From: Cyanophora paradoxa CCMP329
Taxonomy: Eukaryota > Plantae > Glaucophyta
Assembly (NCBI GenBank): GCA_004431415.1
Contig: QPMI01000044.1
Span: 310,001-374,000 of the forward strand
Direction: 5' to 3'
Length of the DNA: 64,000 nt
Part shown: positions 51,801-57,800 of the stretch, piece after piece
Numbering within the stretch: position 1 is the first letter of the stretch
How the letters are laid out: every line of letters starts with the position of its first letter
Translations under genes and position numbers: made by a program
The notes under the pieces: generated by a model
Told to the model about the DNA's origin: nothing
The model's input: the letters and a program-made list of their open reading frames with translations, nothing else
Database searches by the model: none

Positions 51801-54800
51801 TGCGCTCACGCGCCGCCGGCGCAGACGGGCGAGAAGGAGAACCTCTGGAAGACGAACAAGATCGGGGACTGGGCGAGCGGCGCCTTCGTCTCGTGCCGCA
51901 CCGAGTACCTCGCCTCGCTGGACACAGCTAAGCCGGAGGTCGGCGTATTTCGGCCTTCCATCCAGCCTGGACTACGCCGTTCCGCAATCGAAATCGCTGA
52001 ACGCTGCGCAGAACCTGTTCGCGCCGGTCGTCAGCGGCGACGCGCCCGACGTCACGCGGCTGCGGCAGCTCGCGACGCTCCCCTTCTCTCGGGGCCAGGC
52101 GGGCGCCTCCGCCGTATGCTTCGTATCTGCGTCTGACTTCGTATGCTTCGGCGTGCGCAGGTGGAGGAGTTCCTGGGCAAGTACGTGCTGCTGCACGGGC
52201 TGGAAGAGGGTGCGTGGCCCTTCGAGCGCTACGCCGCGGAGCTGCGGCGCACGCCGGGCCTCGCCGCCCTCGTCGAGAACCCCTTCACCCTCTCCCTCCT
52301 TGCCCGCATCCTCCCCACCCGCGCCGCCGAGTGCGCAGGCCGCGGCGCGGGTGGCCGCTGCGGCCGCCGGCTCAAGCGTGAGCCGACACGGGCCGGGTGT
52401 GCACGCAGGGAAGGGCGGCCGCGGGCCCTTCGCTCCCGAGAGCTCTACCGAAGCTTCATCGAGGACTGGCGCGCCCGGCCCTGCGCCATGCTTGGCGGGT
52501 CGAGGTCGCCGCTGACGCAGCTACTGCAGGCTGCGACGGGAGCTAGGGCGCGGCGTGCAGTCGGCGGAGAAAGAAGGTGCCGGCCTACGACTCGCTCTGT
52601 GCTCTCTTCTCCGGCACAGATCGCCCCGCGCGCGTCAGATCGGCCCGAGGAGGGGGACTTGCTGGAAGCTGGGTACGACCTCTGCCGGAAGTTTGCCGCT
52701 CTCCTCTTCCGTGTGCGCACCGATGTCTTTTCAAGCAGCCCCTTCGTCGTCGCTGAGCAGCGTCGGTGCAGATGGGCGCGAGCCAGGCCGTGATCACGCC
52801 GAAGCGCGCCAACTGTCGCGGGGGCGATGATGGAGGGACCGCAAAGACCGGTGGCCCTGCCGAAGCGGACCAGCTTGCGTGCGAGCGGCTGCTTGGCGAC
52901 GGCTCGACGCTGTTCGTTCGGAACAGGTGCGCGTGGCCTTCTGGAGCACGCGCCAACGCGCCTAGGCGATCGGTAGTGCGCGCAGCTGCCCGCTGCGGCG
53001 GTGGCGGTCGGGCGGCTCGCTTGGCTTCGCGTTCCTCCACAAAACCCTCGGCGAGTTCCTCGTTGCCGAGGCCCTCCTCGAATCGGTGTGCGCGCCGCAG
53101 AGCGCTGCCGCGGCCTGCGGCTGCCGGTCATGAGTGCACCGCTGGATTTGCTGAAGCGCGCACAGCTGTTGGATGGGGGTGCGAAGTCGAAGAAGGAGGA
53201 CGCGGCGATCAGTTTCTCCACACGGTCTGCGTGCAAGGCTGCGTTTTTCTTGCTCTGCCCGACGTGGTTGGGACCAGGAGCATTGTGGAGGAGACGACCC
53301 TCGTCCGCTTCCTGGCTGAGGCCGTGCAGCACGAGCCGGCGGCGGCGGCCGGAGATGCGCTGCTGCGTCTTGTGGAGGAGAGCCGCCACGTCGTGGAAAA
53401 TGGCGACGGCACGCCAGCGGTCGTTGCAGCCGCAAACGCCTCTACAGTGCTTGTTGCGGGTGGGCCATGGCCGGCCTCTTTAACACAAACTCCATTCTCC
53501 TTGCGCTTTGCAGCACACTTCTCACTTGCGGGGAGAGATCTGCGTGGCGTGCGGGTCCCAAAGGCGAACCTGTGGCGCCTGGAGGCGGCCGGGGCAAACT
53601 TGCAAGGGGCGGACATGCGTGGCTGCTCCCTCGCTGAGGCGTGCCTCGCGGGGGCGGACCTCCGAGGGGCACGTCTCCAGGGCTGCCAAATCTTGCAGTG
53701 GCCTGCAATGAGACATCCCACTAGAGTGAGTGCGGTGGCGTGGCTCCCGGTACATACTTTGATTAGTTCAAAGAGCTCAGATGCTCGCATCCAGTTTGTA
53801 AAGGAATCTGAGACGAGCGCAGGAGAAGCGGCGGATCGTGTCGGGGAGCTGGGACAAGTCGGTGCGGGTGTGGGACGCGGAGACAGGGGCGGAGCTGCTG
53901 CAGCTGCAAGGCCACGTGGGCAGCGTCACTTCAGTGGCAGTCTTGGCGGTGCGCAGGGCCGGGCGGGGAGCCACGGCCGGGCCGCGGCATCCTAAAAGGT
54001 CGAAGGGATGGCGGTGTGAGGGACCACGCGCGGGGGCGGAGGGCCCGGGGCAAAATGCCGGTGCCTGGGCCCCGAGCCAGGACCGAAAGGAGTGCGGGCA
54101 GGCCTAGGGCCGGAGATTAAGGGGAGTGGGGCCGCGTTGGAGCGCGACAGAGGGTCGTTAATGGAGGGCACGGTGGCGGGGCGCAGGACGGGCGGCGAAT
54201 TGTGTCGGGGAGCGAGGACAACTTGGTGCTGGTGTGGGACGCGGAGACAGGGGCGGAGCTGCTGCGGCTGCAGGGCCATATGAGAGGCGTCACCTCGGTG
54301 GCGGTCTCCGTGGTGCGCAGGGCGGGGAGCCGGGGCCAGTCTGGGGCGGGCTATAGCTAAGAGCTCAGAGGGATCGCAGTGTGGGGCAGCTGGCCGGGGG
54401 TGGAGGGGCGATAGGCCGGGGCCGGGGACCCGAGCCAGGACCGAGAGGCGTGCATGCACAGGCGGGGTCAGAGGGTGAGGCGGCATCGGAGCGCGGTGGA
54501 GGGTTCTGACGCGATGGGGCATGTTGGTGAGGCGCAGGAGGGGCGGCGGATCGTGTCCGGGAGCATGGACACGTCAGTGCGGGTGTGGGACGCGGAGACG
54601 GGGGCGGAGCTGCTGCGGCTGCAAGGCCACATGACAGGCATCACCTCGGTGGCGGTCTCCGTGGTGCGCAGGGCGGGGAGCCAGGGCCAGCCTGGGGCGG
54701 GCTAAGTGCTCAGAGAGATTGCGACAACGGGGCAGCTCACGGTTGGCAGAAGGGAAATATCAATAGGCCGGGGACGCGGTCCTGAGCGAGGGCCGAGAAG

Positions 54801-57800
54801 CGTGCGGGCGGGACCGGAGGCCAAGGGGAGTGGGGCAGCATGGGAGAGCGGCGGAGGGGTGCTTATGCAATTGGGCGCGGCGGCGGGGCGCAGGACGGGC
54901 GGCGGATTGTGTCAGGGAGCACGGACACCTCGGTGCGGGTGTGGGATGCGAAGACGGGGGCGGAGCTGCTGCGGCTGCAAGGCCACATGGAATTTGTCAC
55001 CTCGGTGGTGGTCTCGGCGGTGCGCAGAGCGGGGGCCAGGGGCGGGCCAAGGCAGGCAGAGAGCTCGAGGGGAAAGAAGCACGAGGCAGCTGGCGGAGGA
55101 TGGAGGGGCGATAACTATTTCGGCCGGGGCTCGGGCCCCAATCGCGAGCAAGGGCCGGGAGGTGTGCAGGCGGGGCCCGAAGGGAGTGGGGCATGAGCAG
55201 CATCGAAGCGCAGCAGAGGGACGCTGACGCGACGGGTGCGGCGGCGGGGCACAGGACGGGCGGCGGATTGTGTCGGGGGGCGAAGACAAGTCAGTGAGGG
55301 TGTGGGACGCGGAGACGGGGGCGGAGCTGCTGCAGCTGCAGGGCCACACTCGCTTCGTCACCTCGGTGGCAGTCTCGGCGGTGCGCAGGGCGGGGAGCCA
55401 GGGCCGGGCCGCAGCAAGCAAAGAGCTCCAGGGGATAGGGGGGGGGGGGGGGGGAGGGGGGAGGGAAGGGGGGGGGGGGGGCAGGTGGCTTGGGGCGGAG
55501 GGGCGATAGGCTGCCGCCACAAGAGGTATGCGGGCGGGACTGGAGGCCAAGAGGGGTGGGGCGGCTTCGTAGCGCGGTGCAGGGACGCTGACGCGACAGG
55601 CGCGGCGGCGGGGCACAGGACGGGCGGCGAATCGTTTCGGGGAGCGTGGACAGCTCGGTGCGGGTGTGGGACGCGGAGACGGGGGCGGAGCTGCTGCAGC
55701 TGCAAGGCCACGAGGGCAGCGTCACCTCGGTGGCAGTCTCGGCGGTGCGCAGGGCAGGGAGCCAGGGCGGCACACAAAAACTCGAGGGGATGGCAGCGGG
55801 GGGTAGCCGGCAGAGGATAAAGGGGCAATAAGCTGGGGCTGGGGCTCCAGCCAGGGCCGCGAGGCATGTGGGTGGGGCCAAAGGCCAAGGGGAGTGGAGC
55901 AGCGTTGGTACCCGGCAGAGGGGCACTGACGCGACGTGCGTGGTGGCGGGGCACAGGACCGGCGGCGGATTGTGTCGGGGAGCGAGGACAACTCGATGCG
56001 GGTGTGGGACATGGAGACTGAGGCTGGGCTGTTGCAGCTGCAAGGCCACGAGGGCAGCGTCACCTCGGTGGCGGTCTCGGCGGTGCGCAGGGGGAGGAGC
56101 CAGCTGCAGGGCCGTGCTGCGGCAGGCTGAGTGCTCATAGGGATTGCGGCGCGAGGCAGCTAGCTGGGGGCAAAGGGGTGATGGGCCTGGGCCAGGGCCC
56201 CGAGCCAGGATCTAGAGGCTTGCTGACGGGGTTGGAGAGGAGCGGGAGAGGCTCGGAGTGCGGAAGAGGGGCGCTGATGCAATGTGGCGTGGCGGTGGGG
56301 CACAGGATGGGCGGCAGATCGTGTCGGGGAGCTGGGACAAGTCAGTGCGGGTGTGGGACGCGGAGACGGGGGCGGAGCTGCTGCAGCTGCAAGGCCACAT
56401 GGACGTCATCACCTCGGTGGCGGTCTCGGCGGTGCGCAGGGCAGGGAGCCAGGGTCGGGCTGCGGCACGCAAATAGCTCGAGGGACGGCGCCGGCGGGGC
56501 GGGGCATGCACAGCTGACGGAGGATGGAGGGCGATAGGCCGGGGCCGGGGCTCTAGCAAGGGCCATCGTCAACAGCGTGAAGACGGGTTCAAAGGGGTGC
56601 AGGGTGGCGCCAAAGCGTAGTTTAGGGGAGCTGACATGATGGGGTGCGGTGTTGGAGCGCAGGACGGGCGGCGGATCGTGTCGGGGAGCTGGGACAAGTC
56701 GGTGCGGGTGTGGGACGCGGAGACGGGGGCGGAGCTGCTGCAGCTGCAAGGCCACGTGGGCAGCGTCACCTCGGTGGCGGTCTCGGCGGTGCGCAGCTGC
56801 AGGGCGGGGAGCCAGGGCTAGGATGTGGCTCGCAAATAGCTCGAGGGCCATGTTGGAGGACTGAGGGGCGATGGCCCAGGCTGGGGCCCCGAGCCAGGGC
56901 CGAGATTCATGTGGATCATCGGATGGGGCCGGAAGGGAGCACGATAGGTTTGGGAGCGTGGGGGAAGGGCTCTGATGCGATAGGGCACGGCGGCGGGGCG
57001 CAGGACGGGAGGCGGATCGTGTCAGGGAGCTACGACAAGTCGGTGCGGGTGTGGGACGCGGAGAGGCGGGCCGAGCTGCTGCAGCTGCACGTCCACATGA
57101 GAGGCGTCACCTCAGTGGCGATCTCCCCGGTGCGCAGGGGGGGGGGGGGGGGGGGGGGGGGAGCCAGGGACAGGCCGCAGCATCCTAAAAGGTCGAGAAG
57201 TTGGCAGCCTGGCAGCTCGGGGCAGCTGGTGGAGGAGTGGAGCGGCGATAAGCCGAGTCAGGGCTGAGAAGCATGCGGGCGGGACCGGAGGCCAAGGGGA
57301 GTGGGGCAGCATGGGAGAGCGGCGGAGGGGCACTGACGCAATGGAGCACAGGATGGGCGGCGGATTGTGTCGGGGAGCTTCAACAAATCGGTGCGGGTGT
57401 GGGACGTGGAGACAGGGGCGGAGCTGCTGCAGCCACAGGGCCATACTCGCTTCATCTCCTCGGAGCATGTTCCCCAGGTGCGCAGGGCGGGGAGCCATGG
57501 GCCAGTGCATGGCCAGGGGGCAAATGGCGAAGCGGGGCGGACGGTGGGGGGATTGGAGAGAGGGGCACTGATATATTCGCTTGGCTCATTGATTCAGGAC
57601 GCCATTCAGGACGAGAGTGTCGGTGCAGGACGCCATTTGGCGCTCCCCTCCAGAGAGCCCACCGACCCATCACCTCTTCCTGCCGAGTGCAATGTAAGGC
57701 GATCCAAGGTCCCCAGGCTTGAAGACCCCCAGAACCGCATGGTTCCATTCGCAGTCTACTCGCTCCCTGTGCGCTCCGGATCCACTGCCACCGGATCCAG

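Follow-up and report, generated by a model that had tools for sequence, protein, structure and literature searches.

The stretch analysed here is a window of 64,000 nucleotides (nt) from Cyanophora paradoxa CCMP329 (QPMI01000044.1, positions 310,001-374,000, forward strand), to which all coordinates refer. It contains tig00000178_g12774 (hereafter g12774), which, judged from its predicted domains, is a STAND/NLR-type receptor gene and a member of an expanded Cyanophora family, and in which eleven exons at 53823-57477 encode one WD40 repeat each. We consider it likely that the product is an intracellular TIR-NACHT-pentapeptide-WD40 receptor in which this array forms the beta-propeller that senses the ligand, diversified by recombination and by selection on its top face, with the transcript spliced in order.

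Structure of the WD40 exon array

All eleven exons are 126 nt long, in phase 0 and open, and each codes for 42 amino acids (aa), equal to one WD40 unit (the Pfam WD40 match was run for exons 1 and 4). CAG precedes every exon as the acceptor and GTGCGCAG follows it as the donor, and the exons are spaced at 338-364 nt. Exon identity is 72-94% overall; it is 78-94% among exons 1-10, with nearly all pairs at 80% or more, and 72-80% for exon 11. The array introns (212-238 nt) are homologous, with a mean identity of 67% versus 40-42% in shuffled controls. Eight of the ten are not divisible by three and all ten have in-frame stops; therefore they are not coding linkers. Coordinates, open frames and intron identity thus confirm the array of eleven 126-nt phase-0 exons with homologous introns that a preliminary description of this DNA had proposed. 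Its lists of residues at the S-x-D-x and H-x-x-x motifs were also exact, except that exon 11 has N in place of D and exon 5 has G in place of S. No spare or inverted WD40 exons were found in the window, where tblastn gave eleven plus-strand exons only. In intron 10 (57312-57351) the distance between a branch-like TGAC and the acceptor is about 13 nt shorter than in introns 1-9, and exon 11 is present in spliced contigs despite this.

Variable sites and selection

Column entropy was 1.7-2.6 bits at columns 10, 12, 32, 33 and 34 of the repeat, and at most 0.9 elsewhere except at the last codon (1.5). The variable sites were mapped on a propeller model, that of paralogue P0005 (predicted local distance difference test score, pLDDT, 86.5), where the b-c turn holds columns 10 and 12 and the d-a loop holds columns 32-34; only secondary structure is readable from this model, and their assignment to the top face therefore relies on WD40 convention. 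In HET-E of Podospora anserina, the selected sites sit in the b-c turn and the d-a loop, which make up the top binding face (PMC1805685), and the hypervariable repeat positions are 10, 11, 12, 14, 30 and 32 (PMC12222747). By motif spacing from the published numbering, not by alignment to HET-E, columns 10, 12, 32, 33 and 34 equal HET-E positions 30, 32, 10, 11 and 12. Five of the six positions are therefore variable in g12774, and the earlier claim of their equivalence to the sites of the fungal HNWD receptors holds. The sixth, column 36 (HET-E position 14), is variable in HNWD but almost fixed in g12774, with T in 10 of 11 exons; it varies in paralogues and, when six Cyanophora arrays are compared, ranks within the top four columns for variability. 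The columns variable in g12774 are also the most variable across those six arrays.

The ratio of nonsynonymous to synonymous substitution (omega; counting method, each codon allele counted once) at the six HET-E-equivalent sites was 1.5 with all exons included (p 0.09) and 1.9 with exons 2-9 alone (p 0.04), versus 0.3-0.4 in the WD40 scaffold. These values are no more than suggestive of diversifying selection at the predicted face. A further indication comes from the close paralogue g13286, whose scaffold is 0.91 identical to the g12774 array, above the within-array value of 0.88, although the two have zero variable patches in common.

Recombination and stability of the array

A test of the pairwise homoplasy index (PHI) type gave p 0.0001-0.002 within exons, and p 0.004 when the variable codons were removed; on introns alone it was not significant (p 0.35). 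Introns 3 and 10, which are 77% identical overall, have an identical tract of 57 nt (Table 1). The p value of this pair is 0.0005, or about 0.02 once 45 comparisons are allowed for, and the tract points to a footprint of recent DNA exchange. Recombination among the repeats, as had been claimed, is supported by both results. Several identical tracts span exon-intron borders and others are wholly intronic, indicating exchange between DNA and DNA, not with cDNA. In mechanism, the sequence patterns point to gene conversion or unequal crossing-over at the level of DNA.

The variable patches of nine bases recur with other partners: EDN with MRG and EGS, WDK with VGS and MDV, and TRF with EDK and FNK. 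Such re-pairing of the repeat halves had been described before, and it does occur. However, the patch graph has no cycle, which makes a patch-level four-gamete test uninformative, so that the patches by themselves are no proof of recombination; this is supplied by the site-level tests. Repeat exchange inside g12774 is supported by these data, and for exchange between genes the evidence from sequence comparison is indirect.

DNA contigs of 2019 and 2024, possibly from one strain, equal the window without differences over exons 1-2 (E1-E2), E2-E3, E4-E5, E6-E7 and E7-E8. An assembly artefact was rejected, since contigs from two short-read DNA runs reproduce these five exon-intron-exon spans unchanged, and the agreement argues against fast rearrangement in culture. 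DNA joints that lead to about 56485 from 52373 and from 54895, with no more than 20-21 letters on one side, were treated as repeat artefacts.

Domain organization of the host gene

Using the upstream genomic open reading frame (ORF) as query, a search returned the gene's own public EukProt model, g12774, together with paralogues; all ten entries looked up from this search were Cyanophora paradoxa EukProt proteins. The public model reads through introns and ends after WD40 repeat 3, and the array is therefore mis-called in it. The spliced public model (P0001) was searched whole for the upstream domains, and the WD40 and tail exons were searched singly. Pfam gave the order TIR_2, NACHT, pentapeptide and WD40, that is, the effector, nucleotide-binding domain and repeat sensor of STAND/NLR proteins. 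By Pfam, no HET domain was found in g12774 (TIR_2 was found instead), and no LRR-ROC-COR or NB-ARC-TPR domains.

The TIR_2 domain keeps the glutamate motif C-x-x-E (SQYCGEEF). A PDB sequence search with the TIR region gave no match, and PADLOC matches to it were weak only. A second N-terminal TIR-like domain, suspected by eye, was rejected as pairwise alignment gave no support. In the NACHT domain the Walker A variant G-D-A-G-T-S-K-T is interrupted by an intron (51454-51523) and the Walker B motif LLLDGYDE is intact. The Pfam NACHT score, 26.1 bits, is slightly below the cut-off of 26.7. The structure model of this domain (pLDDT 82) had its best Foldseek matches in NOD2, NLRC4 and NLRP3, with E about 1e-10. 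Across the Cyanophora family (window 51444-51538; paralogues P0002-P0016) Walker A reads G-x-x-G-x-S-K-S/T. At the other end of the gene, the tail exons are open and in phase 0, and the last two match a C-terminal motif of the paralogues. Active HET-E alleles have eleven blades plus three cryptic ones (PMC12222747); in the tail of g12774 no cryptic WD blade was found by Pfam. Two paralogues have fourteen blades, as against eleven in g12774.

Expression and splicing

Gene g12774 is transcribed and spliced, as contigs of two RNA runs from separate studies contain GT-AG joints that are absent from the DNA runs. The RNA joints comprise seven in the NACHT region, that from the pentapeptide exon to E1, E6-E7, E7-E8, and E11 to the tail exons. 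All those listed within the array join consecutive exons, and consecutive joints were seen in both studies. No skip joint was among the RNA joints listed, in contigs that lose rare isoforms and break at repeats; some array exon ends can be distinguished only over as many as 32 letters. An apparent RNA skip from 55349 to 56661 was rejected: it includes 29 letters not present in the window, which match repeat 8 of paralogue g13286 and translate to the repeat end found there. Exon skipping, which the preliminary description had put forward as a source of diversity, thus failed to appear, in what is a weak test. Each array exon comprises strands b, c and d and the next strand a, and its two variable patches are about 60 nt apart. 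Since both lie on one exon, skipping cannot reassort them and exchange inside exons is needed; skipping could alter blade number and neighbours.

Two acceptors 12 nt apart (57598 and 57610), derived from a short duplication, open the tail; they are in frame, differ by four residues, and the contig of each RNA study uses a different one. RNA contigs also extend into intron 4 (55020-55159), which contains a stop in frame, and through intron 53460-53513, which is 54 nt long and in frame, representing retention, pre-mRNA or DNA carry-over. Four further runs with the same species label (X21-X24) contain almost none of the window's words, owing to another strain, low expression or mislabelling.

Relatives and comparison with known systems

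The matches of a longer search included no fewer than 14 distinct Cyanophora-style gene models. In addition to TIR, long N-terminal extensions and SAM domains occur in paralogues P0004, P0016 and P0017; N-terminal modules therefore vary within the family. The nearest matches outside Cyanophora, meaning the best in the search, were proteins of Mortierellaceae, Mycoavidus cysteinexigens and similar metagenomic proteins, with 25-28% identity across NACHT and pentapeptide (E 1e-25 to 1e-33). The Mortierellaceae and Mycoavidus proteins probably belong to the group of 10.1101/2021.12.02.471044 and 10.1101/2022.03.16.484565. Their order of NACHT, pentapeptide and WD40 is the same as in g12774. The single locus read differs from g12774 in that an ARM_5 gene lies upstream and the ORF is uninterrupted, and the relatives checked keep the canonical Gly before the Walker A Lys where the Cyanophora family has Ser.

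The Podospora anserina HNWD/NWD genes (het-d, het-e and het-r) resemble g12774 in having NACHT with 42-aa WD40 repeats of high internal conservation, a variable d-a loop and b-c turn, repeat exchange and eleven conserved repeats (PMC1805685, PMC12222747). HNWD repeats are 80-100% identical within a gene, close to exons 1-10 of g12774. HNWD genes also differ in length and sequence between wild isolates, whereas the two Cyanophora DNA runs, possibly of one strain, match the window. Chimeric repeats made by recombination are documented in Podospora hnwd genes (PMC2873952), and highly conserved repeats occur in NLRs throughout the tree of life (PMC13449251). On the other hand, g12774 has TIR_2 instead of HET, a pentapeptide linker, and one exon per repeat with homologous introns; NACHT searches with it gave no HET-E-like match. 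For want of a HET domain it is not an HNWD member, though it would work alike.

The ROCO-LRR and NB-ARC-TPR genes of the brown algae Ectocarpus and Saccharina likewise have one repeat per exon and symmetric phase, and their binding face is under diversifying selection (PMC3341825, PMC11378527), of which g12774 gives suggestive signs. They use LRR with ROC-COR or TPR with NB-ARC, whereas g12774 uses WD40 with NACHT; they have spare or inverted intronic repeat exons, unlike the g12774 window; and alternative splicing of repeat exons is reported for them, in contrast to the consecutive joints listed here. As the lineage is unrelated, the likeness is convergent. Gene g12774 thus combines HNWD-like evolution with a brown-algal-like exon layout.

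Arthropod Dscam1 has tandemly duplicated exons with variable recognition residues (cited in PMC11378527); these exons are mutually exclusive alternatives. The exons of g12774 are instead joined consecutively and add one blade each. In the literature covered, from which subscription papers are mostly absent, no description of NACHT-WD40 receptors or of this family in Cyanophora or glaucophytes was found.

Alternative explanations

If the array were an ageing set of duplicates under relaxed constraint, its surface loops would simply tolerate change, in a gene that is decaying or serves as a non-immune scaffold. Such an origin would fit the eroded exons 10 and 11, the scaffold changes in exon 7, the array size of only 11 repeats, an all-exon omega not significantly above 1, and a column 36 that is nearly fixed here and hypervariable in paralogues and HET-E. 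But we regard it as unlikely, because the scaffold is under purifying selection, each translated exon is open through to the family's C-terminal motif, and the gene is transcribed in two studies; moreover, the c-d loop, although also exposed, is conserved unlike the top face, and the patches differ wholly from those of g13286 despite a near-identical scaffold. Regulated exon skipping in the manner of Dscam could instead yield many propeller isoforms from one gene, up to 2048 in-frame subsets, given that every array exon has the same length and phase and near-identical donors and acceptors. Alternative splicing of the brown-algal ROCO and NB-ARC-TPR repeat exons has been reported (PMC11378527), and g12774 shows splice variation elsewhere, at the paired acceptors and in the contigs entering introns. 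Against this stand the consecutive joints of two studies, the tracing of the one apparent skip to a paralogue, and the reassortment of patches inside exons, which skipping cannot produce. Blade number would also change, yet functional HET-D/E alleles usually have 11 repeats and one misplaced repeat inactivates a het-d allele (PMC12222747), and skipping as the main source of diversity appears quite improbable. There is likewise a slim chance that low-frequency or infection-induced skipping on top of DNA shuffling provides a splice-generated, Dscam-like immune repertoire in a glaucophyte NLR. For brown algae it has been proposed that exons are reshuffled within clonal cultures, through RNA-templated conversion or a programmed somatic rearrangement. 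For g12774 this is very improbable: the cassette-like layout, exons more alike than introns, the many homologous arrays in the genome and loose contig ends would suit it, but DNA samples five years apart agree with the window, identical tracts in introns and across exon borders indicate DNA-DNA exchange, and inverted or spare exons are absent from the window.

Several observations weigh against the receptor interpretation that we favour. The Ser before the Walker A Lys is family-wide, and ATP binding is a prediction from the motifs. The selection test is modest and is weakened by GC-biased synonymous sites. Eleven blades, compared with fourteen, may represent an incomplete second propeller. 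Turnover of the array is not very fast, given that the introns are only 67% alike and the intron-only PHI test is not significant, and the 2019 and 2024 DNA contigs are identical to the window wherever listed. Of the combinatorial receptor in the preliminary description, the NLR type is supported, by its domains and NOD2-like fold; diversification by exon skipping has so far gained no support.

Proposed mechanism and significance

The array would have originated when a unit of one exon and one intron was duplicated in tandem. Within g12774, gene conversion and unequal crossing-over would then homogenise the scaffold and transfer short tracts among repeats, probably with exchange with close paralogues as well. 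Selection may favour novel top-face residues, arising by point change and spread by recombination, with the mRNA presumably spliced mainly in order. By analogy with the NLR and HNWD literature, a putative non-self ligand, most likely viral or otherwise microbial, would bind the variable face; binding would release NACHT autoinhibition and drive oligomerisation, and the oligomer would activate TIR signalling or cell death, giving the receptor an immune role.

Glaucophytes branch early within the plant supergroup, and these findings extend to them the NLR sensors that generate diversity; a unicellular alga appears convergent with fungal HET-E in its top-face positions and with brown algae in its exon-per-repeat layout. 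Because introns preserve exchange tracts, which uninterrupted repeat arrays cannot, the mechanism of repeat homogenisation is testable here. The family has been hidden in protein databases because public gene models mis-call the arrays. A testable question is raised as to the sensing of viruses that integrate in the Cyanophora paradoxa genome.

Table 1. Features of g12774 and its WD40 exon array, with variable residues of each repeat in brackets
Feature	Coordinates	Strand	Evidence
Whole NLR-like gene tig00000178_g12774	48814..58225	+	Public model; 3' end from RNA contigs
TIR_2 domain, several exons, approximate boundaries	49830..50790	+	Pfam TIR_2, E 1.6e-16 on P0001
NACHT module exons, including helical and winged-helix parts	51213..53460	+	Pfam, structure model, RNA joints
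Pentapeptide-repeat exon, ends with first WD40 strand a, spliced to WD exon 1	53514..53749	+	Pfam Pentapeptide, E 8.9e-16; RNA joint
WD40 exon 1 (WK, VGS)	53823..53948	+	Pfam; RNA joint from pentapeptide exon
WD40 exon 2 (EN, MRG)	54187..54312	+	
WD40 exon 3 (MT, MTG)	54538..54663	+	
Tract of 57 nt in intron 3, identical to 57274-57330 in intron 10	54803..54859	+	
WD40 exon 4 (TT, MEF)	54894..55019	+	Pfam
WD40 exon 5 (EK, TRF)	55255..55380	+	
WD40 exon 6 (VS, EGS), spliced to exon 7	55619..55744	+	RNA joint
WD40 exon 7 (EN, EGS), spliced to exon 8	55957..56082	+	RNA joint
WD40 exon 8 (WK, MDV)	56306..56431	+	RNA joint
WD40 exon 9 (WK, VGS), 94% identical to exons 1, 6 and 8	56663..56788	+	
WD40 exon 10 (YK, MRG)	57004..57129	+	
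WD40 exon 11 (FK, TRF), last strand degenerate, spliced to tail	57352..57477	+	RNA joint
Four phase-0 tail exons	57598..58225 (57598 or 57610-57768, 57843-57905, 57968-58027, 58103 to stop)	+	RNA contigs

Neighbouring features in the window

A phytochrome gene (Pfam PHY, E 1.5e-19) lies on the minus strand at 43751-45900, divergent from the NLR-like gene. On the other side, a convergent minus-strand gene at 59408-62059 has eight TPR units in a 126-nt phase-0 register, of which seven are closed by donors and the last runs on; its upstream part lies beyond the window end. The TPR units are only 60-75% identical and are therefore much older than the WD40 array. Further upstream, at 6583-31793, is a 25.2-kb endogenous Polinton-like or virophage-like element of 44% GC, which appears to lie inside a host gene. 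It has terminal inverted repeats of about 930 bp (925/938 identical) and a 6-bp target duplication (CACGCC), and carries genes for an rve integrase, an A32 packaging ATPase, a patatin and a long Peptidase_S74 protein, together with a weak helicase match.

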